Assembly: GCA_965644295.1 (NCBI GenBank)
Contig: CBFFRP010000456.1
Coordinates: 1 to 15,007 of the forward strand
From: Paraphysomonas bandaiensis
Taxonomy: Eukaryota; Protista; Chrysophyceae
Length of the DNA stretch: 15,007 nt
Direction of reading: 5' to 3'
Shown piece by piece: positions 315 to 15,007 of this stretch. The notes beneath the pieces were generated by a model. That model saw nothing but the letters and a program-made list of their open reading frames with translations, had not been told where the DNA came from and ran no database searches. The position numbers and the translations under genes were made by a program. Position 1 is the first letter of the stretch, and every line of letters begins with the position of its first letter.

Positions 315-2226
315 TCACAAATTCTTTTTAAATTGAGAAAACGAATTGCGGACTGCAGTGACAACTGGAAACCCAATGTACCCTGCAGATGCGAGACATA
401 TTGCAAGCAGCACGCCACGCACCCAGTCTTCGGATTTTTCTTTGCCTTGGATAGCATACCAATCTTGTCCATCGTCCAGTATACCAAGAATATAAAAATA
501 ATCCTTGTGTATCATGTTTTCGCGAGAAATATAAACATTCCGACTCAGTCCGCTCCAGTCAGTTGCAACTACGTCCGACGGCCCGTATGCCTGATGTACT
601 CCAATAGAGAGATGCTGAGTAGGCTCGCCAAATATAGCCATGGCAGTAAGGAATGAAAAGTGAGCAAGCACTAATACCGTCAGTACACGACTGCATCGAA
701 TAGAAAATCGCTGGGCACCGCCAACGCACAGTGTGTTGGTCGCGGCAGCATATATACAAACAGCTACATACGCCAATAAGGTGCAGCAGAGCATGGTCGT
801 ATTAGGTGGGTGTAACAACGGCGGTAAAGTTTGAGACACCATTATTTGTATAGTCATCATATGCAGCATCATCATTGGCACAGATAATATACACACAGTT
901 AGAAACATACGAAATAACTGTCCCGTAGTAAAACCTCTTTGCTGGAAACGCGTAGATCCACTGGATTGAAAGTGTGTGGAAGTATTCAAACAGTAATTAA
1001 GTAAAAAAGAAAAGCAACACTGAAAAGTAAGCATCCACATTGTGCTTGCCACTGGTACACCAAGAATTCGAGGAATAGTGTTGTTGTCTGAGTCGTGCCA
1101 TCTGCATATAACACGGCATCAGTAGCGATACGCAGAACATGTGGACATGGCACATGTCACACAGGCATTATAACCCCATGTGACTAATTTAATGCAATAA
1201 ACTTACGTCCACCAAATAAACTTTGCTCCTATAATATCAAAAGGCCAATAGAAGAGACAACCAAGCAATGCTGTGGTAATTGGAATGACCCAATGTGATA
1301 ATCGTAACTGCCATATATATGCAGATGGGACATAGAGGACTACAATGTATACGAACCCAATATACAGTGGGAGGCGATTGGTTAGCATAAAGGTTGCTTG
1401 GGCGTGCCTACAGGGAATACATAAGAGGAATACATGTATAGTGCATTACATCTACAGATAGAAGTGCTGCCATAGATATATACATACATGACTATAGTAT
1501 AGCATAGTAGGCCTATATAAGAGTATATACGACTACAGTATCGTGTATTATATATGAGTATATGCAAGTATAGTATAGTCTAGATATTACATGTACGTAC
1601 AGTGTATATGAGTATACTAGAGTACACATGAGTAGACGTATAGCATAGTCCATATATAAGCGTGTATGAGTATAGTATAGCTATATATAAGTACAGTGCA
1701 TACGAGTGTACTATCGCATAGTATACATGCGTAGAAGTATAGTAGTATAGTATATATGTATATATTCATATGATAATTCATGTACTAGAAGTGAAGATAC
1801 ATGAATTTACAACTACATATATGAGTATCTACAGCTCTATATAAGTACAGTGCATATGACTATAGTATACTACACATCAATACACGTCTTGTGCATATGA
1901 GTATGAATTGAACCGTATACATGAGTATAGTATAGTGTAGTATATATGTATATATTCATATGATAATTCACGTACCAGAAGTTATCTACTAGAGGAAGAT
2001 ACATGAATATATTCTCATTTGCAATTCCAGTAAACAATGCACAAAAAAACAACAAAATATGTTTTTGTTTTTGTATATGATCATATCGACTTGATGCATG
2101 TATAAAGCACATAAGTGCCATAGAAGCCCATATAGCCTCACATAGAGGATATGAAGGCATCCTGTGAACCACTGTAGGGTCAAAATGATGGAAGGATGAG
2201 GTAACAGCAGCGAATGAGACTGGCAT
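315..2226 (-). CDS. Uncharacterised multi-pass membrane protein, 3 exons (2226-1976, 1407-1207, 1101-315), ~412 aa
   Basis: ATG at 2226. GT-AG introns 1975-1408 and 1206-1102 join three ORF pieces in frame (total 1239 nt): ...VDNFW|HAQATFMLTNRLPLYI...PFDIIGAKFIWWT|WHDSDNNTIPRILGVPVASTMW... Many hydrophobic segments. The D...WxW...GVP...W pattern loosely recalls CruF/DUF422-like membrane proteins; family not verified. Confidence 0.8.
1420..1975. repeat. Low-complexity TATAG/GAGTA-rich intronic repeats, including a decayed copy of the exon1/intron1 boundary
   Basis: Recurrent gagtatagtatag-type units. ~1747-1805 resembles ~1938-2005 (tagtatatatgtatatattcatatgataattca..ta..agaagt..gaagatacatgaat). 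Confidence 0.6.
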
Positions 2227-2595: not shown

Positions 2596-2617
2596 TGTTA
2601 CGACCCAAGAGAAAAAT
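2596..2617 (+). repeat. Left terminal inverted repeat
   Basis: TGTTACGACCCAAGAGAAAAAT. Confidence 0.92.
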
Positions 2618-2618
2618 G

Positions 2619-2659
2619 AGCCAGTTGCTCGACTGGCACTGCCAGTCGAGCAACTGGCT
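2619..2659. repeat. Perfect 41-bp subterminal palindrome (20-1-20) with nested sub-palindromes
   Basis: AGCCAGTTGCTCGACTGGCA-C-TGCCAGTCGAGCAACTGGCT; each arm contains GCCAGT-N6-ACTGGC. Confidence 0.92.
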
Positions 2660-5400
2660 TCATGATGATGATGAATCAAGAAGTATACTGAGAATACAAT
2701 TATACGCCTTTATACAGCATGATATCATCAGACAGCATCTCATACTATGATCATAAGAGCCCCTGATTATTAGCCCAGAAGATGCCATTCCAGCATACCA
2801 GCCTTCAGTATCAAGATAGATATCTGTATCCCTCTTCAGTGCTACTTCCTTCTTCATGAGAGCATGAATATGACATATAAGAGTATCTGATTATCACATG
2901 GGAACGGTTGTGACTAGAAGCTATGTATATATCTATAGTCTTACTAACTTGGTTGTCAAGTCATGCCCGGTTTAGCCTTTTACTAAATTTCTTCCCATTG
3001 CATAGGATTTGTCCTAGACGTATACCGTTTCGCATATGCGGTCTGGGAAAGAGATGTAGTGTTAGGGGAGTTATGGGTGCAGATTGGATGGAGTTTGTGT
3101 GGGAGCCTCGTTCCACTGCGTGTCCAATACTGCGGGTCTCGCTGCGTTTGTGTAGCGTACATGCTGTCTCGCTGAGGATGTATTGATGTAGGTCCCATTG
3201 GTGATTGAGGTCTGTAATAACTCCTAGCATTGGACCAATGTCTGTGAGTAAGTTCGCATCGTATCTTCGCCAGTGCTATTGACCCGTGGTGAGGAATTCT
3301 TCCAGCATGTGCGTTACACCAACTGCAGAGTGCTGTTTCCCTGAGGACGTTAGTTGGTCCACTTCCCCATACAGTGGACACGATATCAAGGTAAATAGTG
3401 ACTAAATTACTTATAGCTGATATACTGATGATATTAACTAATGTAGTACTACTGTACAGATGATACTCTGTATTCAATACATATATGATGACAGCGGATA
3501 CTCCTTATAGGCTACTACATCATCAACTGCAGAGTGCTGTGTCCCTCGGGGACGTTAGTTGGTCCACTTCCCCGTACAGTGGGCACAACATCAAGGTAAA
3601 TAGCGACTACATTAGTTATAACTGATATACTAATGATGTTAGTTAATAACGATTTATATATCACTAGTAGCAACTAATATTCATGTTACTTGTAGAAACC
3701 AGCTATCAGGTTATTCTATACTATGAGCTCTCTACTGTATGTGCTTGCGCTTGTACATATTCCATGTTTGAAAGGATACAGTTATTATGAATGTCGACTC
3801 TATGAGTCATGATCTACTCAGTAATATGACTATTATGTGATAAGCTTTATATTGAAATATGCAATGATATAAAACATTTGAACTAGATGTACTTTGCATC
3901 AACTACAATGAAATGCTGAATGTACCTTCCCTTATACATTTATTAGTAAACGACACGAAGTTGTGATAAACAACACAAACTCATTTTGTTTCATGTATAA
4001 TCTCCTACATATGTGAACCTGTCGTTGTTAAACATATCTTGAAAGATCAAACTATTCATCATCAGCATTTGTACATCACTGTACATTCAAGTGACATACT
4101 GAATATACTCGAATAAGATTATATTCTAATAAGTAAGAAGGACCTTTATTAGGATTCAGCTTAAGACAAGATAGTATCTGTGAGTTATAATGTTCAATGA
4201 AATATATCATGCACTGAATTAGAGGGAGTATCTGTTGAAGATACATGATCATCATCATAACGTCGTCATTATCAGTTACACTTCTAACCATTCCGTTGTG
4301 CATGATAGCTATGTTTTATATTGTTATTTATAACTCTCACTTTACAGACTCTGGTATCTCATACTTGTTTAGATGTTATCTATACTCGGTTAAGTAGTAG
4401 TTTACTATGACACAAACTACTTGTTATCAGGGATAGGGAACAATATATTCTTGTATTGGTGGACTGGTCAAATATTCCATCAATATCTAAAGTTGAAATA
4501 TCTAAGTACAGGTGCACGAGTCAGCCATGTAGTATGTAGTTGACAGTTGTGGCCGGATGCAAGCATATTTCAATCAGTATTGAATGAATAATGATTATGG
4601 TGATGATGATGTCACCGATGATGGCTCAGAGGATAAGTATGAGGAAACTTTTAATTAGTTAAGAGTAGTGGGTTTGATTATCAAGTGACCTTAGACCTTA
4701 TAATGACAAGTACTAAAAGTGGAAACTACGGATGTGTTTACTTACTGACTAGTCATATACTAATATTGCAATATATTGAAATAGTAATATAGGGCCGGTT
4801 TAAAAAATCCATCAATACTATTGATGGAACGCTATCTAACAATAGTATTGCAATATATTGTTCCATATCCCTGCTTGTTACAGCACGCAACCAAAGTACT
4901 TTTGTGGCCCGTAGTTACAGAGAAATCCATTCTTCTTGCATACACATTTATTAGTATTGCACTTACCCTTCCAACTACATTTACAGAGAAATCAGATGGG
5001 AAAACTAATCGCATCAACTTGATGTGGGTTAGTTAAAACAACACTACCCACCTGTACATTCCTCTGATTCATGATCCTCGATATCATTAATCATTAATCA
5101 TACATACCGTAGCTACAAGCTCTTCTAAATCCTCTTCTGTTTGGTTTTTTTTGCTATGAGTAGATCACTAAGACCTCTTCTAGGATGTTGTCCAAACAGC
5201 AGCATGTGAGGAGTAGATTTTATTCTGGAGTGGTGCCTGCTGCCCTTTTGGAACTGCTATTTAGATAGGCCTCTACGCATTCCGATAGAACAATATTTTC
5301 TGTAGAGACAGTGCTCCCTGATGATACAATATCAACCGTCGTTGATACAATGGTATATATTGATCATATATTAGTATCATGCTGTTGCATCGATAATCAT
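2660..5400 (-). pseudogene. Possible decayed cargo gene(s) inside the element; product unidentifiable
   Basis: Short minus-strand ORFs in shifting frames (2660-2857, 2961-3230, 2983-3477, 4832-5017) and an intron-like gtatgt...atcag near 5107-5064. No recognisable motif. Confidence 0.25.
3320..3647. repeat. Diverged direct repeat, ~124 bp x2 (~3320-3443 and ~3524-3647)
   Basis: Both copies begin caactgcagagtgctgt...ggacgttagttggtccacttcccc; differences are mostly transitions. Confidence 0.85.
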
Positions 5401-5449
5401 CAGCTATATCTTACATGTGGGTGGAATGAAAAAAAACACGGCTGGATAA

Positions 5450-5568
5450 ATGAACTGGCACTGCCAGTTCATCGACTGGCTCATTTCAGCGACGGGTTTT
5501 TAGGTGCAAGGAAAAAACGACCAGTCGCTCGACTGGCAGTGCCAGTCGAGCGACTGGCTCATTTTTCT
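5450..5568. repeat. Two internal palindromes (5450-5472; 5521-5557); 5521-5568 is an inverted copy of 2610-2657
   Basis: ATGAACTGGCA-C-TGCCAGTTCAT and CCAGTCGCTCGACTGGCA-G-TGCCAGTCGAGCGACTGG. 46/48 match to the left subterminal region in opposite orientation. Confidence 0.9.
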
Positions 5569-5722
5569 GTAAAATGTGGAAGGTACCGTACTCAAGCCCG
5601 CACCATAATGGTGTGGAACTATATAAGTGGTGATGATGAGTGACCAGTGGTATGTATGGTGTTGCTGGTGAGTAATAGATCCAGGGAGGTGGGTGTTGAA
5701 GGAGGAGCTCTCTCATCACAGC

Positions 5723-7916
5723 ATGGTATCATACATACAGAACATAATAACAGCGAGAACATATCATAGTAGCATGGAATCAACTACCACGGAATCAACT
5801 ACCACGGAATCAACTACCACGGAATCAACTACCACGGAATCAACTACCACAGGGGGCATTAGAAAAGTCGGTGATGGGGAAACCAAAAATCGTAACTCCT
5901 CTGCGTTAGCTCAGTTTGCGAAGTACTTGGAGATGCGGTTCGACGGGAAGAAGAGGTATAAGGAACTCATAGACAGTGATATAAATGTAGAACTATTTCA
6001 ATGTTTCGGTGGCTTTTTGATCGATCACGCCGTCCATGGAACAACGAAGAAGCCTTTGACCCTAGGTACTGCTTGGCAGTATTTGTCAGACACGAAGACT
6101 GCGCTGACGAAGCGATTTAAAAGAAATGAGTTATTAAGCAGCTCCAATGAGCTGTGGTACAAAGATGTGAGAGCGGCAGTATCAAAGCATATTATCAAGC
6201 GGTGTATCGCACAAGGAGTGCGTATATCAGAGAAAACAAGTCCAGTGGGGAAAGAACTAATGAAGCGCATAGGTGAATACATTATACATCGGGCATCTGA
6301 TTTCTCCGGTAAGTGGACATACTTCACATATCTATGATTTACTGTATGCTAATAAACTTTATTTAGAAGTGAAGAAGTATTCATTGTACAATCTCTATTT
6401 GGTTTTCACGTTTGCTGCTGTTGGTCGGGTGTCTGAAGCAATGTTTGCTTCGTATAATAATGCAATGTGGCACTGCGATGGATACTTAACGTTTGATTGG
6501 ACAGAATTGAAGGTGGCTTCTATCAAAACAATGAACTTTTTTCCCGACTACTCTTGTCTAGAGACTTGTGTTTTCTTCGCTTATTCAATGTACTGGATGT
6601 CCTGTACTGCAGCAGATCTCAACGGTGACTTCGTCTTTCCAGATCTAGCATTGACTACATCAAGCGCTAGTCAATTTGTTTCTAAGCTACTAAAACAAAT
6701 GATCGGGAAGGTACCTGGAGTTACAAAGGAAACAACAGGCAAGGGTCTTAGAGTCGGGGCTGCAACTGACATAGCCAGTAGTCAGTCAGGCGGCATCTTC
6801 CATGCGATTATGCGTGGAGGATGGGACTTCTCCGGAGAGTGCAGCATTTTTGAGTATATCATGGGACTAGATGTCACTATTGCTGTGGGTGGAAAAATTT
6901 TAAGTGGCTACTCTAATCCCAGGAATAAGATATATCCACCCGAGTGTGTATTTATCAACAATGGAAACCGAGAACAAGTGATGGCGTTAATCGAAACATG
7001 TTATCCACTCACTTACCCAGAATTTGGGGTTGATGGCTGTCTATTTCAATTTAAACTCTCTGTGTTTGCTACATTCCTTATGAGGTTACCATCATTTGTT
7101 TCTAAATACACGGCACAACATGCAGTGGTTTGTAAATTCAAGCACAACATGATGCGCCACCATTTCACTTGGAATGACATAATGCAATGGAGTGCTGCGA
7201 TTGAGGAGGAATGGCTTCGCCTTAATTTTGTAGACACAAGAAATGTAGACGAAATTTACCAGGAGAATCGCATTCTTCGAGACCAAATACAACAGCTTCA
7301 TAGAAAGTGTGACACCCAAACTATTGCAATAGCTGATCTGCACAAGAAATTAGACACTGCTGTGGCTGATATTCTAGAAGGCTTGAAAAATATTCCAACG
7401 GATACCACTATACCAACTTCAGAGACTGTATCACGGATACCTACATCGCCTACAGTCTTGCCTCCGATTACTGAAGGACCTTCCAAAGGTCCATCCACTA
7501 CTACGACAAATGTTTTTCAATACATGAGAGTTAACATGCAGCGCATGCCCCATATATCCTTCATTCAATATAAAACTCTCGAAAAATTATGCTTATCAAC
7601 AGTTATTATTGACTATTTTGATTATGAATTACATGAAATTGTAGGAAAGAGATACCCTATGGTAGACAACGTCAACAAACAGAAAAAACTAAATCGAGTA
7701 TTGACTAAAGGACTCGGCCTATTGTACGATGACGAGAAACGTTTTCTTGATGAGCCGAAACCCTGTATGGCAAGTCAGTCTACTTCGTACAGAGAATGGA
7801 AGAGTAATTTAAAATGCATAGCTGAAAAGGTTGAATTGCGTGTTATTGTTGATTTATTTGGTCAGGAAAATTACGACAAGTTTCACCCCAAAAAAAAGCC
7901 TCTAAGAAATACATAA
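5723..7916 (+). CDS. Tyrosine recombinase, Crypton-like; exons 5723-6308 and 6367-7916, ~711 aa
   Basis: 58-nt intron 6309-6366 (gtaagt...tgctaat...tttag) joins the two ORFs in frame (ASDFS|EVKKY). YR-type motifs: FAAVGRVSE (R, 6426), ELK, TGKGLRVGAA (K-x-x-R, 6741-6752), RGGW (W, 6822), IFEYI (Y, 6855). N-terminal helical core-binding-like region (TAWQYLSDTK) and a C-terminal coiled coil. The start could instead be ATG 5774. Confidence 0.85.
5776..5850 (+). repeat. 15-bp tandem repeat x5 encoding (ESTTT)5 at the recombinase N-terminus
   Basis: GGAATCAACTACCAC, five perfect copies. Confidence 0.95.
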
Positions 7917-7993
7917 ACAGTATATATGATGCAATGAGTGCACGAAGGGACAGTGATGGTAACATTATTCCAAGGACAAAGAAAAGGAAACTT

Positions 7994-8927
7994 CAGTCTG
8001 ATGTTAGTAATCTGTAGAATGCCAATATATGTATTCATTTATAACCACTCCATCAACTTTTTATAATGTACCCTTATAATTAATGATTCATTAGTAATTG
8101 GAATACATCGTATCATTATTTACAGAGCATACAACAGTATAATCAACCATTACAGCGTTCAGCATTTTATTATTCGACACAGTCTGATGTTAGTAATCTG
8201 TAGAATGCCTATATGTATTCATTTATAACCACTCCATCAACTTTTTATAATGTACCCTTATAATTAATGATTCATTAGTAATTGGAATACATCGTATCAT
8301 TATTTACAGAGCATACAACAGTATAATCAACCATTACAGCGTGCAGCATTTTATTATTCGACACAGTCTGATGTTAGTAATCTGTAGAATGCCTATATGT
8401 ATTCATTTATAACCACTCCATCAACTTTTTATACTGTACCCTTATAATTAATGATTCATTAGTAATTGGAATACATCGTATCATTATTTACAGAGCATAC
8501 AACAGTATAATCAACCATCACAGCGTTCAGCATTTTATTATTCCACACCGTTCAGAATTCTTATCACATACAGCCATACTGCATACCCTTACACAACATG
8601 ACACATATTCACTGCAAGATGGAACAGGGGCAGCCGGGCGCTTGTGTCGCTTAGGCATCCCTCTTGCACCGGTAAGTATAAACGTCATTGCGCCTACAAC
8701 AGCATAATAAACCATCACAGCCTTCAGCATTTTATTATTCCACACCGTTCAGAATTCTTATCACATACAGCCATACTGCATACCCTTACACAACATGACA
8801 CATATTCACTGCAAGATGGTACAGGGGCAGCCGGGCGCTTGTGTCGCTTAGGCATCCCTCTTGCACCGGTAAGTATAAACGTCATTGCGCCTACAACAGC
8901 ATAATAAACCATGACAACATTCAGCAT
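7994..8927. repeat. Composite tandem array: three ~185-bp units then two 197-bp units, sharing a ~50-bp module
   Basis: cagtctgatgttag starts at 7994, 8180 and 8364. The second unit recurs at 197-bp spacing (8513, 8710, partial 8907). Confidence 0.92.
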
Positions 8928-9379
8928 CTCATATACCATCACACAACATAGTGCATGCATGATATACAGCCTTCTATTCCTTCAAATGTACCACTTCTCA
9001 TCTCTCTGCATACCTGACACTTTAAATAGGATGATGGGAGCATGATGCTCCCACCTGGAATTCAATCATTGATATCCATATCATATCACTTCATACCATA
9101 ATATACAGCCCTTCACAGTTCCTCTCCATACAGCCTTATAAACCTCGTCCAGTAACTGCATATCTCATCTCACAGTTTCATGAAATAAGATGGTAGCAAC
9201 ATGTTATCACCTATCATTCAAGCACTCATTAACGTGTATCTGCTGCATATGGCTGCCTCGTCATATTACTATATACATATACTCGATGCATGTGATATGA
9301 TGCACTATGCTATGATGCACTCTGCTGATTGGATCACTCGATGGGCGCACTTGCTGTGCGGCCTTTGTGTAAAAACAAG

Positions 9380-9408
9380 GGTGCGGGATCCCGCACCTGC
9401 GGTGCGGG
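9380..9408. repeat. Right subterminal GC-rich overlapping palindromes
   Basis: GGTGCGGGATCCCGCACC (9380-9397) overlapping CCCGCACC-TGC-GGTGCGGG (9390-9408). Confidence 0.85.
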
Positions 9409-9415
9409 CTAAATA

Positions 9416-9437
9416 ATTTTTCTCTTGGGTCGTAACA
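9416..9437 (-). repeat. Right terminal inverted repeat
   Basis: ATTTTTCTCTTGGGTCGTAACA, reverse complement of 2596-2617. Confidence 0.92.
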
Positions 9438-9442
9438 TATCC

Positions 9443-9445
<3 letters not shown>

Positions 9446-9475
<30 letters not shown>

Positions 9476-9513
9476 GGTATGTATGTATGTATGTATGTAT
9501 GTATGTATGTATG

Positions 9514-9547
<34 letters not shown>

Positions 9548-9705
9548 TGTATGTATGTATGTATGTATGTATGTATGTATGTATGTATGTATGTATGTAT
9601 GTATGTATGTATGTATGTATGTATGTATGTATGTATGTATGTATGTATGTATGTATGTATGTATGTATGTATGTATGTATGTATGTATGTGTATACGTAT
9701 GTATG
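9446..9705. repeat. (TATG)n microsatellite, ~65 units
   Basis: Directly visible, with TAGG, TATA and TACG variants. Confidence 0.98.
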
Positions 9706-9797
9706 TTAGCGATATGGATATGCATGTTTGTGGCTGTATATATTTATACTATCCAGCCATAAGAACACATTACATCTAGACTCCTCCACACCACACC

Positions 9798-11227
9798 ATG
9801 TATCGTAAACTACTCATATGTGCATTCTTCGCTTTACTCGCTTACCTAGCGAACGAATATCTCCGAAGACACTGGCTATTCATCTACCCTCATCCATCTG
9901 ACTTTCAACACACTGCAAAAATCATAGAGAGGCCCATACCCACTACATACTATGATATTGATAAACTAGGAGATGTTCTAACTACTGTAAGTTATATATA
10001 TGTATATAGGTGTATATGTATACTTTTCTATACTATATTCGCGTACTGTGTATGTATAGGCATATGTATGCACTCTTCTCATATATTCACATACTTTATA
10101 TGCATATGAACACACACTTCTCTCATACATTCACTTCCGGTGTATATGTATGCATATGTACGCACACTTCTCTCATATATTCACATACTTGATATGCATA
10201 TGTATGTATAGCTCACGCATACATTCACTTACTTTTGTTTTTAGTGGGACGATTCTTTTCAATTATACAGAGTTAGAGATGGACAAAAATTCGAATTTGA
10301 TTATATGAATACCATAAAATTTCCAGTTTTAGCTCATCGTATTCCTGAAAAAATGAGACCACAATCAACATTATGTTCCCCTCCATTTCATATACATGAA
10401 CCTCCAGTAGAAAAAAATACAACTGATATATTTTCTGATCCAGGATGGTATGCTAGTTTTGCTAAAATGTCTCCAAAAGATGCAGAAAATATGTTTAATC
10501 TTCTGAAACTACCATTTTCTGTATCAGAGAGTGAAAAAGAACATGGTTTTATATCTAATTTTAATAAACCTATGCTTACATGTAAGTAGTGTTAGATACT
10601 TATAGAATACATTCTAATTATTTATGTATATATGTATTATATACAGCACCTATTCATGCTACTCCTATGGTACTTAGTATGGCAGTTCAACTGATTGGGA
10701 GTAAATCATGGGTGTTCGGTAAGTCTTTTTTGTTATGTGATATATTTCCATATATATATAGAACTCAACTACTATTCTGTACAGTTAAACCGGATGATTA
10801 TCGTGGTGATGATATGTGGTCGGCTATGCCGGTAGCCTCTACTATGCGGCCGCAGCGTGTTCCGAAGGGTGAATTCGAGGTGTGGTTTTACACATCCCAA
10901 CCTGGTGATGTACTCTTCTTCCCTGAGTCCTGGGGGCATATTGTGTACACTCATCCTGGCCCTTGCGTGCTCATGAACTACCGGAATCTAATTCCAAACA
11001 ACTTTCTGCGACAACCGATTACCTATATGACTGCCCTCGTCAACCAACTACTATTCGGTCGTCCTCCTACCCAGAAGACTGACAAGAATGAGTGGCCTGC
11101 TCCTGAAATGAGATTCAACCAAGAAATCGCGAAGCGCATTGACGATGCGCTATGTTCGAACAACTCGCTTACTCCTTTCGACAAAAGCATGATTGACTAT
11201 ATTCGGAAGAAGACAGGGGATGCATAG
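9798..11227 (+). CDS. JmjC/cupin-fold protein with N-terminal signal/anchor; exons 9798-9986, 10245-10581, 10647-10718, 10785-11227; ~346 aa
   Basis: Three gtaagt...ag introns give a continuous 1041-nt frame. Motifs SPIHAT...VQLIGSKSWVFV and QPGDVLFFPESWGHIVYT fit the JmjC/cupin pattern (GxKxW; PGDxLFxPxxWxHxV). Hydrophobic N-terminus. Confidence 0.82.
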
Positions 11228-11782
11228 ATGGAAGTATCAGTGTATTACTAAAAAATGTGACTTCTTGACACTATTGATGGTGGTTTGAGAGTCAAGTATT
11301 GTAAGTTGCACATACTTTTTTTGTTCTGTGGTACACAAGTATTCCTTAAATTTAAGAGGTAATCGTCCTATTTTTTAATATTTTGAAAGGCCCGATGAGT
11401 CCTTGATAATTGGTCTTGCCTTTGTTTTTTTACACTTTTATAACTTTGAGGTGTAGAATGTAGAATCTGTTGAGTTTTGCTGTTTAAGCAATTATAAGCT
11501 GTAATTCTAAGATATTGGAATTATGACGGTTAGTCGAAGAACACAGTATAATATATACATTATACATTACAAGTAGGAAATACTATAAAAGCGAGTATAA
11601 TGCAGATCTGTATCATGAATGAAAAGACAAAGTATGTATTCAATTAAAATAACACATAGTACAGAGTAAAAATTAACGGCAATTAATACCTAGAACCAAC
11701 AAATATACATACCACGACAAATACGAACCAAAGCAAAAACTAGCTCCCAACCACCTGCTAAGAAGCAGAAGCATTGTGCACT

Positions 11783-12782
11783 TCAGAAGTCTTCATCGCC
11801 AATCAGGGAAGTATCGTCATTGACTGTATCGTCATTGTTCAGACCAACGTCTTCCTTCTTCGGCTTCCTGAACGTTTGAACCATACTAACCTTTCATTCT
11901 TGAAGAAATCGAATCGCTGTCATTTGTCTGACAAATTTTGTCACCAGCTCACGCCGGGAATCCCGAATAGGGTTCATACCGTCGGTCGTTCTGGAGCAAA
12001 TCTCAGACGTCCACGCTGTGGAGGATCTAAAAGCATATACGAGCCCATATTTTTGACTTGATGCTGTCGTGGACTGATAGCCTTTTCAAAAGAATATGAC
12101 ATCAGTTGGTGCAATAATAAATACTTACCAATGCTTCAGCTAATTCCCGTCAGAATGATACAGTCGCCCACGAAGACTGTTTGGAAAACAACTGGGCGTG
12201 ACAGCATCTAATCTTAGTCTTCAAATTGCACGACAATTTGCGAATATACTTCATTCTTCATTACATACCTGCAATGATATTAGAAAAAGGTAATATATGT
12301 TATACGATATATATCATAAGATATCATAATAATTGATATGGTTGTTCAAAAAACACAAGATGCATCCAGTGTAATGATACTATGATATGTATGAAACCAC
12401 GGTGTACGATATATTAATACACGATGAAAGGATGGTATAATATATAATATGATGATATGTGATGCTATGGTTCATACATCATCTCTTTGTGATAAGCACG
12501 GAAGCCTGGAAGAGTGGAGAGTTATTCGGTGCTCTGGCGTCCAATGCTAAGCTCATTCGCTGTGAGAACCGTGCCCAATATCCTGGACTGGACTTTCTTG
12601 TGCCTGAAACTCTTGTAAATTGTCGAGTTGGATGAAGAGTTATATGAAGGCAACCTGGTTTGTCGAGGTGAAGCATCTGACTGTCCGGCGCCGAAGTTGT
12701 CGTTCACGATGGATCGCTGTTGACAGGGCTGTTTCTGAGCCCTTGCAGGCGCAGCAGATGCAGTTTGTTTTCGCGGGGGCAT
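11783..12782 (-). pseudogene. Probable disrupted spliced gene of unknown product
   Basis: MPPRKQ... start at 12782, intron-like 12128-12082 (gtaagt...aag), and a last segment 12081-11783 open except one TGA at 11896-11894, ending in an acidic tail. Other stops and frame shifts upstream. Confidence 0.35.
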
Positions 12783-13375
12783 CTCACAGTAAATTGTGGC
12801 ATTGAGTCACGATGGCATCACATGTTTGAAATTCAAATATTCACATACTCTCCGAATCATACTAACGCAGACACTTCCTCACACTTCACTCACTTCGCCT
12901 CTTCACTTCAGCTACAAGAAAGTACGAAGTTGGATAGGAGTGATATCCTTCGTACGGTAGTACACAGCACAGGGGTACACAGTACAGGGGTACATAGGTA
13001 CACAGTGGTATAGTGTACGTAGTAGTCTATACAACAATCTTCTACGTGATATACAGCAGTACCATACACAGTATATGGTACAGAGTACGACGCGGCCAGG
13101 CGTTGGATTCAGAAGCAACGCAAACAATGAGAATGGCAGCAGTGACCACTCCTCAGAATGTGATAGCAATTCCTGTACTGATTACAGCACGTCACTGGTA
13201 ACTCGCCTGATAATGACAATGACACATAATTAACATTGCGTGCTTATTGTTGATTGTAGGATGCACAGTCTACTTGTTTAGTAATGGTGTATATATATAC
13301 ATATATAGAAATAATCTAATAATAATAGATATATTATACTCTTGACCGCTGCGTTGCCACATCTCTATAGGTTCA

Positions 13376-13572
13376 GAATTCAGGTACCTACAGGTCTTTC
13401 GTCTTCTACCTATAGGCAGCGAGAAGCACTACCTATAGACAGTACCTAAGCCTGCGATTCCTATAGGTGGGGTCATTAGGCATGACTATAGGTGGGACCT
13501 ATTAGAAAGGTACCTATTAGGTACTTGCGGTGGGCCTATAGGTAGGCAGAGCGACCTATAGGTACCGAATTC
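13376..13572. mobile_element. Foldback/MITE-like element rich in CCTATAGG palindromic motifs
   Basis: GAATTCAGGTACCTACAGGTC at the left versus GACCTATAGGTACCGAATTC at the right (inverted; 1 indel, 1 mismatch). Inner inverted pair CTACCTATAGGC / GCCTATAGGTAG. No TSD identified. Confidence 0.55.
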
Positions 13573-13643
13573 GTCCCACCGATGGTTACAGACTATGGTT
13601 TAGTCTAAATACATATAACATATTCCAAATCTGTTGCCTTCTA

Positions 13644-14660
13644 CTAGCTATAATCGCTTCCGGTGGGGGTATCAGGCCGCCCAAAGTCTGCGCTGATGCA
13701 ATCTTGCATTGACACCGAGTAAGCCAAGGATAAAGCAGACTTGAGGTTACTGCAACGGTCCGCTGCAATCGAAAACAGCAAAGGAACCTCGCTGACTCGA
13801 TTGAGGTGCACTACGACAAAACACGAAACAAAATTGGTGAGTAGCACCGGCGGAGTGCGGTAATTGTTGTCCCCACATAGACCCAATAACTCGGTGCAAG
13901 CTTCACGCAGGCCAGACTGCAGTTCACTGGGGCGTGTCAAATCTTTTATAATCTCAATGGCAAACAAAACGTTGTGGCGGGCAATATCACCAAGGGGGTT
14001 TGCATCCATAATAACGATATCGGTTCTCCCTCTAACTTCTCCCCTGTATAGTACTTTCCCCTTCTTCTTATTGAATACATCGTATTCACGCAGAGTGAAG
14101 ATGGGTGTACTGAATAGAAGACCGTCCGCCAACCTTTGACCATTCCCAACAGCAGCACTCACCAATTGCACCTGTGTACTCGAACTGATGAATTCCTTGA
14201 AAGCCGCGCAGAATGGATCATACACAGATACTTCATCTGTGCAACCTGCCGGCCACGCCCATTTAAAGTTAAACCGCGAGAAATATTTTTCTGATGTGTA
14301 AATATCATTGCTGAGAACGGGGAAATCGATTTTGAGATGGTCCAATAGGGCTCTCAGATTCTTCTCTTTAGTTTGGGAAGCCGCTGACGGTGTCAAGACA
14401 ATGTGAACCACTGCGGCTGGTAGATGAGACAAAATCTGATGGAGCATCAAGCTTTGTCCCTGCTGGTTGCGTTCTATCTCCTGCAGATGTCGTTCCACCT
14501 CCTGCAGATGTCGTTCCACCTCCTGCTGGTTGCGTTCTATCTCCTGCTGATGTCGTTCCACCTTCTGCTGATGTCGTTCCACCTTCTGCTGATGTCGAAG
14601 ATTTAACACAAGAGCGAAAGTAACTACTCCAACAACAACATAAAACTGCCAGTCATCCAT
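13644..14660 (-). CDS. 338-aa protein: N-terminal TM, heptad coiled-coil repeats, C-terminal PD-(D/E)xK restriction-endonuclease-like domain (Crinkler-associated type)
   Basis: Intact ORF. FYVVVGVVTFALVL; HQQKVER-like 21-nt repeats (~14459-14598); GRTDIVI...FAIEIIK...EACTELLG...PPVLLTNF resembles REase-fold motifs. Family assigned by motif recognition only. Confidence 0.65.
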   Translation of the reverse strand: MDDWQFYVVVGVVTFALVLNLRHQQKVERHQQKVERHQQEIERNQQEVERHLQEVERHLQEIERNQQGQSLMLHQILSHLPAAVVHIVLTPSAASQTKEKNLRALLDHLKIDFPVLSNDIYTSEKYFSRFNFKWAWPAGCTDEVSVYDPFCAAFKEFISSSTQVQLVSAAVGNGQRLADGLLFSTPIFTLREYDVFNKKKGKVLYRGEVRGRTDIVIMDANPLGDIARHNVLFAIEIIKDLTRPSELQSGLREACTELLGLCGDNNYRTPPVLLTNFVSCFVVVHLNRVSEVPLLFSIAADRCSNLKSALSLAYSVSMQDCISADFGRPDTPTGSDYS

Positions 14661-14693
14661 TGCGTCAATTCGAATTGTGAGAGATTAGAAAAC

Positions 14694-14998
14694 TGTACGT
14701 ATGTACGTATGTATGTATGTATGTATGTATGTATGTATGTATGTATGTATGTATGTATGTATGTATGTATGTATGTATGTAGGTATGTAGGTATGTATGT
14801 ATGTATGTATGTATGTATGTATGTAGGTATGTATGTATGTAGGTATGTATGTATGTAGTAGGTATGTATGTATGTATGTATGTATGTATGTATGTATGTA
14901 TGTATGTATGTAGGTATGTAGGTATGTAGGTATGTAGGTATGTAGGTATGTATGTATGTATGTATGTATGTATGTATGTATGTATGTATGTATGTATG
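14694..14998. repeat. (TATG)n microsatellite with TAGG/TACG variants
   Basis: Directly visible. Confidence 0.98.
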
Positions 14999-15007
14999 TG
15001 TTACGAC
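14999..15007 (+). mobile_element. Probable terminus of a second element of the same family, truncated by the window end
   Basis: TGTTACGAC equals the first 9 nt of the TIR and immediately follows a (TATG)n tract, as at 2596. Confidence 0.65.

Follow-up and report, generated by a model that had tools for sequence, protein, structure and literature searches.

DDE enzymes of the retroviral-integrase type make 4-bp staggered cuts, and microsatellites are the targets of certain DNA transposons, of which Micron is a plant example. The Ginger2/TDD transposons have terminal inverted repeats (TIRs) of 50 to 180 bp with TGTNR termini, 4-bp target site duplications (TSDs), and an RTATAY target (Bao, Kapitonov, and Jurka 2010, PMC2836005), and the hosts described in that work are animals, Dictyostelium, and one fungus, with no marine protists among them. 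In IS481EU/Banshee, the termini read TGT...ACA, the TSDs are 4 bp in several families and 15 to 24 bp in many, and non-autonomous derivatives occur; IS481EU is described only from parabasalids (Kojima 2023, PMC10045372). Reported precedents for DNA transposons that target microsatellites include MuTAnT, a Mutator-like family targeting TA microsatellites (PMC4486113), a report on guayule and rice (PMC5907723), and one on pineapple. Cryptons are recombinase-only elements that have neither TIRs nor long terminal repeats (LTRs), and their short terminal direct repeats (4 to 7 bp) are read as the substrate of recombination (PMC3212892). Accounts of them have been given by Goodwin (2003) and by Kojima and Jurka (2011, PMC3212892), CryptonS being the stramenopile group.

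Here, we analyzed a DNA stretch of 15,007 nt (referred to as the window), in which a 6.8-kb interval has the appearance of a TIR element with a recombinase gene. The interval is in fact made up of two unrelated elements, one nested in the other, and it is surrounded by (TATG)n microsatellites, a third tract of which leads into a further candidate element end at the close of the window. As examples both elements are new; the kinds that they represent are already known.

Dissection of the 6.8-kb interval

In the preliminary description of this DNA, 22-nt TIRs were assigned to the interval at 2596 to 9437, and a single element was implied. The right end as found in the window does have 22 nt in common with the left end (2596 to 2617 on the plus strand, with the inverted partner at 9416 to 9437 on the minus strand). 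The repeat finder further revealed an inverted copy of the left subterminal part at 5521 to 5568, which is 96% complementary to 2610 to 2657 and consists of AGAAAAAT and a 41-nt palindrome. When position 5568 was joined in silico to 9424, the right end could be aligned with the left end over 62 nt without any gap, 60 of the 62 positions being identical. The stretch that drops out by this joining (5569 to 9423) is bracketed at both junctions by an 8-nt direct repeat, ATTTTTCT, whose left copy, presumed to be the crossover region, lies at 5561 to 5568 and whose right copy lies at 9416 to 9423, both on the plus strand.

Five contigs or transcripts show 92 to 99% identity with the window where they overlap it, and all of them match it only rightwards of ~5563. 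Upstream of the junction TTTT/CTGTAAAATGTGG, these five sequences exhibit three mutually unrelated contexts (four with the window's own), and TTTTCT, which is part of ATTTTTCT, is common to all left junctions, in the window as well as in the three other contexts. The TIR and the palindrome were absent from every external locus of the recombinase element that was retrieved. Since the 62-nt TIR is restored by the joining and the recombinase unit occurs in other contexts, the 6.8-kb interval must be read as two elements, one of them nested in the A-run of the right TIR of the other. The 22-nt TIR is a truncated view of the terminal repeat, the true TIR being 62 nt (60/62) once the nested element is removed; the implied single element is very unlikely, because the recombinase unit is removable and is found elsewhere free of TIR and palindrome.

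It could be argued that all of 2596 to 9437 is nevertheless one autonomous element, whose 22-nt TIRs bind its own recombinase and whose TATC serves as the crossover core. The joined ends of a circle would then form inverted arms around TATC, much like a recombinase site, and the only recognizable gene between the TIRs is that of the recombinase. We regard this as very unlikely and as largely refuted already, given that the same left boundary recurs in three further contexts that have neither TIR nor palindrome, that excision of the recombinase unit restores the 62-nt TIR exactly, and that an overlap of 4 nt falls below the range for tyrosine recombinases, given as 6 to 8 nt (PMC3212892). In automatic annotation, the 6.8-kb interval would probably be misfiled.

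A TIR element resembling Ginger2 and IS481EU in its termini

The TIR element is 2,987 bp in total, with its main body at 2596 to 5568 on the plus strand and its last 14 nt at 9424 to 9437. Its left 62-nt TIR (2596 to 2657, plus strand) starts with TGTTA and includes the A-run AGAAAAAT. The right TIR is split apart by the nested element into an inner part of 48 nt (the palindrome and AGAAAAAT), which lies together with neighboring subterminal sequence at 5507 to 5568 on the minus strand, and an outer part of 14 nt at 9424 to 9437 on the minus strand, which reads CTTGGGTCGTAACA on the plus strand. The termini are TGT...ACA (TGTTA...TAACA), with TGTTA found at 2596 and, on the minus strand, at 9437, and they are flanked by a 4-bp duplication, TATC (2592 to 2595 and 9438 to 9441), as seen in one complete copy. 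A perfect 41-nt palindrome is contained in the TIR (2619 to 2659 at the left end), and the single-strand DNA hairpins of the two palindromes gave energies of -26.5 and -26.9 kcal/mol, with z scores of -9.7 (left) and -8.7. There is an additional subterminal copy of AAATGAGCCAGTCG at 5473 to 5486, and the motif AAATGAGCCAGTYG was likewise found again subterminally in the element.

The longest open reading frame (ORF) of 2596 to 5568 comprises 164 aa, and neither a Pfam match nor a homologue was found for it. With no ORF matching a family or a homologue, the TIR element is considered non-autonomous. An internal direct repeat of 120 bp is present at 3317 to 3436 and 3521 to 3641 (88% identical); it overlaps the 164-aa ORF and a 52-aa ORF, both on the minus strand and seemingly not genes. 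Searches with a 20-mer of the TIR returned 0 matches in JGI metagenomes and 0 in viral contigs. One match in prokaryotic genomes was rejected as a chance hit, since the sequence diverges immediately and no repeat adjoins it.

The 62-nt TIRs with TGTTA...TAACA ends, the 41-nt palindromes, and the 4-bp TATC would together represent the signature of retroviral-integrase-type DDE transposons, such as Ginger2/TDD and IS481EU. The TIR length of 62 nt falls within the 50- to 180-bp range of Ginger2/TDD, the 4-bp TSD (TATC, in one complete copy) is of the same size, and the TGTTA ends fit TGTNR. Compared with the RTATAY target of Ginger2, the sites read GTATCC for copy 1 and GTATG? for copy 2, which is an agreement of 5/6 positions at best over two sites; the target is like that of Ginger2 in being AT rich and mostly alternating between purine and pyrimidine. 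Unlike Ginger2, the TIR element does not contain an integrase-like transposase (a Gypsy-integrase-like DDE domain with an H2C2 zinc finger), and it sits in a tetranucleotide microsatellite instead of isolated RTATAY sites. In a comparison made by the ends, it shares with IS481EU the TGT...ACA termini, short TIRs, the 4-bp TSD of several families, and the non-autonomous state of some derivatives, whereas IS481EU elements come from parabasalids and in many families show TSDs of 15 to 24 bp. Like the plant transposons reported to target microsatellites, which are often non-autonomous, the TIR element is embedded in a microsatellite and is non-autonomous; it differs from MuTAnT by its (TATG)n tract, its 4-bp duplication, and its integrase-type termini. 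By its terminal features alone, since no transposase was found, the TIR element appears to resemble the Ginger2/IS481EU type, and other superfamilies with 4-bp TSDs are possible.

The nested element and its tyrosine recombinase

The nested element (5569 to 9423, plus strand; 3,855 bp) carries a tyrosine recombinase only and is devoid of TIRs of its own, an inverted alignment of its 200-nt ends yielding a score of 23 as opposed to a mean of 16.6 and a maximum of 27 for shuffled sequences; nor did the repeat finder list an inverted pair for these ends. On either strand, the ORFs of >100 aa in this stretch were the recombinase gene and one overlapping ORF on the opposite strand, and no reverse transcriptase (RT), RNase H, or DDE match was obtained for the ORFs of the recombinase gene against Pfam. 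A DIRS/Ngaro retrotransposon was considered and rejected, there being no RT or RNase H domain and no inverted or split direct terminal repeats. Tandem repeats of 184 bp (three copies) and 197 bp (2.2 copies) extend over 7994 to 8927 (plus strand), downstream of the gene in the non-coding 3' portion of the element; they are 96 to 98% identical, and transcript contigs break within them.

The recombinase gene runs on the plus strand from 5693 or 5723 to 7916, exon 1 extending to 6308 and exon 2 starting at 6366, and the 57-nt GT-AG intron in between (6309 to 6365) is removed in transcripts. The proteins deduced from two transcripts (L001 and L002) are 742 and 765 aa in size. A run of eight A residues at ~7890 to 7897 of the window corresponds to nine in both transcripts, by which the frame is shifted and the last ~34 aa are lost; the difference may reflect a genuine frameshift or else a sequencing or assembly error in the homopolymer. 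Near the N terminus, a 15-nt repeat (ESTTT) is located at 5776 to 5850, and its copy number varies, the window, L001, and L002 differing by multiples of 15 nt. Deviations of other kinds were seen in metagenomic copies: one contig (L003, ENA ERZ17293498) is an internal-deletion derivative in which window position 6543 is joined to 7742, and two others (L004 and L005) lack 37 nt (window 6325 to 6361), unlike the 57-nt intron that is spliced in the transcripts.

A relative of the recombinase, P0001 (742 aa, 99% identical), comes from JGI transcriptome sample 3300017004, and its cluster mates are encoded on a second transcript of the same sample and on metagenome contigs in ENA, part of which belong to Tara Oceans project PRJEB4352. 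A word search with the recombinase returned its own cluster only. Searches of the recombinase against Pfam gave no family at E values up to 10, and nothing meaningful was found in the PDB by phmmer. The representative search identified 560 relatives at an E value of ≤0.001, and conservation was counted in an alignment of 38 of them, with the numbering of P0001. R216, K244, R324, W348, and Y359 are each kept in 37 to 38 of the 38 sequences, within a set of conserved motifs comprising AVGRxGE, ExKT, LRxGA, RGGW, and a Tyr; the first catalytic His position is occupied by T in 14, H in 13, and K in 10 sequences and is Lys in P0001. Among the 38 relatives, Pfam matches were obtained to Phage_integrase in two and to Phage_int_SAM_5 in one, and neither P0001 nor any of the 38 matched DUF3504 or GCR1_C. 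The family profile showed a weak match to Cre residues 284 to 328. An AlphaFold model built from the family alignment has a mean pLDDT of 90.1, and its top fold matches in the PDB are all tyrosine recombinases, including Cre (over both domains, with ~330 to 350 aligned columns), Flp, XerH, and lambda Int. These data indicated that the nested gene encodes a transcribed and spliced tyrosine recombinase with an R-K-R-W-Y set of residues and a fold that is predicted to be Cre-like. The family is thus an expressed, intron-bearing tyrosine-recombinase transposon family whose copies are nearly identical between a culture transcriptome and ocean metagenomes, and as the family numbers at least 560 relatives but has no Pfam model, its description should be useful to the annotation of protist genomes.

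A relative of 28% identity (P0179) was found at 5694 to 9191 of L009, an 11.8-kb metagenome scaffold, at a distance of 2.3 kb from the gene for a Gypsy-type polyprotein with RVT_1, RNase H, and Integrase_H2C2 domains. L009 looks like a transposon-rich region of another organism, and P0179 gives no information on boundaries, as its two contigs represent the same locus.

The right boundary of the nested element, ...CTAAATA(ATTTTTCT), is defined in one copy. Contigs with C-terminal protein fragments end soon after the stop codon, and a search for the right end elsewhere with the 22-mer at 9386 to 9407 matched just a GC-rich bacterial contig, by chance. The element is like Cryptons in its size class (3 to 5 kb), in having a tyrosine recombinase as its sole gene, in the absence of TIRs and LTRs, in the short direct repeats at both ends (TTTTCT within ATTTTTCT, the right junction being known from one copy), and in a seemingly low copy number. 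As a lead only, CryptonS-1_PTri, the single diatom Crypton in PMC3212892, has CTGTAAG repeats, and the left junction here, TTTTCTGTAAAATG, contains CTGTAAA. CryptonS elements typically have TATGG as their terminal repeat, which the nested element does not, and, unlike CryptonA and CryptonF, the nested recombinase has no match to DUF3504 and GCR1_C, respectively; a further difference is the Lys in place of the first catalytic His, a position that varies (T/H/K) across the family. By its organization, the nested element fits the description of a Crypton, and with no DUF3504 or GCR1_C match, we call it Crypton-like.

A candidate second copy at the window end

The third microsatellite tract (array 3) lies at 14694 to 14998 on the plus strand, as read from the sequence and from TRF, which reported a 4-nt period at 14694 to 14999 with 76.8 copies. 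It is a (TATG)n array in which TAGG variants are numerous and the phase slips once, and it finishes with 13 pure TATG units that directly abut TGTTACGAC at 14999. This 9-mer (14999 to 15007, plus strand), at which the window end cuts off the sequence, is identical to the left terminus over its first 9 nt and represents the first bases of the 22-nt terminal repeat described above. The preliminary description had pointed out that the window closes with TATG/TGTTACGAC, the same 9-mer in the same orientation relative to the repeat as at 2596, and this held: exact matches to the 9-mer number 3 in the window, counting both strands, versus 0.13 expected, and none of 200 shuffles gave 3 matches. Two of the three are the true ends of copy 1. 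At one fixed position, the 9-mer has a p value of 3.8e-6 by base composition, and the value is 6.2e-5 when the calculation is restricted to the 7 nt that do not fit the repeat. The junctions read TATG TATG TATC/TGTT at 2596 and TATG TATG TATG/TGTT at 14999; both are in phase with the repeat, so orientation and phase agree.

Array 3 differs from the other tracts in its variants, being rich in TAGG and having zero TATA units, and it starts with GTACGTATGTAC, a pattern of its own that marks it as an independent tract. No relatedness was detected between the DNA upstream of array 1 and that upstream of array 3. The earlier statement that a second copy of the terminus follows an independent (TATG)n tract is thus upheld by the unrelated upstream DNA and the distinct variant pattern. 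Judged from the 9 nt that are visible, another copy of the TIR element probably begins at the very end of the window. Past 15007, copy 2 would continue as the TIR, with CCAAGAGAAAAAT and the palindrome, and its partner end would read ...GGTCGTAACA, followed by TATG. A flanking duplication that differs by site, TATC in one case and TATG in the other, is a reasonable prediction from the TATC of copy 1.

Arrays 1 and 2 flank copy 1 on the plus strand. Array 1 (2284 to 2595) has the structure TATC CATG (TATG)62 TATA (TATG)12 TATC, its last TATC (2592 to 2595) being the left 4-bp duplication, and array 2 (9438 to 9706) has the structure TATC CATA (TATG)7 TAGG (TATG)9 TATA (TATG)43, its first TATC (9438 to 9441) being the right duplication. 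The two share the opening TATCCAT (followed by G and A, respectively), and each contains one TATA unit. (TATG)n sequence makes up ~6% of the window, both visible insertions lie inside it, and it is found on both sides of copy 1 and on the visible side of copy 2. Since arrays 1 and 2 border the same element, the three tracts represent only two insertion events. The assertion that all three tracts adjoin an element end is therefore true of each tract, with one insertion counted twice. As for the "strong target preference or co-origin" that had been proposed, a preference for TAT(G/C) within (TATG)n is plausible from the junction sequences, at two insertions in a window chosen for these very features, and so not "strong"; co-origin appears rather unlikely, as discussed below.

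Alternative explanations and proposed mechanism

The 9-nt match at 14999 might have arisen by chance or be the mutated end of a microsatellite, considering that 9 nt are seen, of which the first two (TG) are also compatible with the repeat, and that even the TIR 20-mer had one chance match in 596 Gb of prokaryotic DNA. We hold this to be highly improbable in view of 3 matches against 0.13 expected, with two of them being true ends, of p ~6e-5 at a fixed position even for the 7 non-repeat bases, and of the agreement in repeat phase and orientation at both sites. Still less credible is a segmental duplication, by which array 3 and the terminus would be a duplicate of array 1 and its terminus, with no independent insertion: the order, (TATG)n and then TGTTACGAC, is indeed the same at both sites, but self-BLAST detected no similarity between 1 to 2288 and 9707 to 14693, and the two arrays differ in how they start, in their variant units, and in the unit at the junction (TATC in array 1, TATG in array 3).

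The TATCCAT at the start of both arrays around copy 1 would not be expected if the element had simply inserted into a uniform tract, and under such an insertion, the locus before insertion would have been one continuous array with an internal TATCCATA. Arrays 1 and 2 may instead be paralogous direct repeats of ~300 bp and not the halves of one tract. In a co-origin scenario of this sort, the (TATG)n arrays would travel with, or be duplicated by, the spreading TIR element, either through repair-templated copying of the element and its flanks between microsatellite loci or through an insertion into an array at its first TATC, with unequal exchange or template switching afterwards; in another form, the double array would have been present before insertion. 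The shared 7-mer TATCCAT, the one TATA unit in each array, and the bracketing of the element by ~300-bp direct repeats of similar build speak for it. We nonetheless consider it rather unlikely, as TATC lies exactly at both junctions like a normal TSD, the start of array 3 (GTACGTATGTAC) and its variant pattern are different, and a lone TATA variant per array could have arisen independently. We know of no integrase-type transposon that duplicates ~300 bp. The duplications of IS481EU reach 24 bp (PMC10045372), compared with the ~300 bp required. A stronger version, in which the spread of the TIR element is mechanistically coupled to the microsatellite and each insertion is bracketed by paralogous ~300-bp arrays starting with TATCCAT, seems to us improbable; conceivable routes are homology-directed copying of the element with its flanks or a transposition that duplicates the whole structured repeat tract. 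Were it true, the TIR element would be driving the origin and spread of tetranucleotide microsatellites in the protist.

We favor, at a probability of roughly 60%, a joint reading in which the 9 nt at the window end belong to the TIR element, either as another copy of it or as a solo end, in which this non-autonomous cut-and-paste transposon is mobilized in trans by an integrase-type enzyme with (TATG)n as a favored target, and in which a Crypton-like element later invaded copy 1. In this scheme, a transposase of the integrase type, encoded elsewhere in the genome, would mobilize the TIR element, and (TATG)n would be favored because every unit offers a near-consensus GTATGT site; with such a site in each unit, both insertions are proposed to have taken place, for that reason, after a complete TAT(G/C) unit and in the same orientation. 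The Crypton-like element would have invaded copy 1 afterwards, within the A-run of the right TIR, presumably integrating in circular form through site-specific recombination at (A)TTTTTCT, and the junction of the circular form would read ...CTAAATA-ATTTTTCT-GTAAAATG... Should the preference hold genome-wide, a tetranucleotide microsatellite would be the homing site of a TIR transposon whose termini are of the integrase type, with tandem near-consensus RTATAY sites as a simple rationale for the targeting.

Surrounding host sequence

The window has ~40% GC, a spliceosomal intron, and many microsatellites, and no RNA family was found in it by an Rfam scan. The DNA is eukaryotic and, given its matches to a culture-type transcriptome sample and to marine metagenomes, is taken to come from a marine protist; a human origin was rejected, as nothing resembling human sequence was seen. 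None of its features concerns a toxin, an effector, or a virus of animals, humans, or crops. Two ORFs are probably exons of host genes: the one at 315 to 1052 (minus strand) has a DUF7802 match near threshold (25.8 bits versus a cutoff of 27.4), and the one at 10589 to 11227 (plus strand) has a weak Cupin_8 match (17.6 bits). Between array 2 and the host genes, there is a degenerate 94-nt tandem repeat with a 44-nt subperiod (10048 to 10234). Upstream of array 3, a 338-aa ORF on the minus strand (13644 or 13647 to 14660), with no exact record in the protein collection, is a probable host gene; its N-terminal part is repetitive, with 21/63-nt repeats at 14459 to 14597, it shows weak sub-threshold Pfam matches to NNH6 and Nsp1_C, and its relatives, at ≤64% identity, are metagenome and metatranscriptome proteins only.
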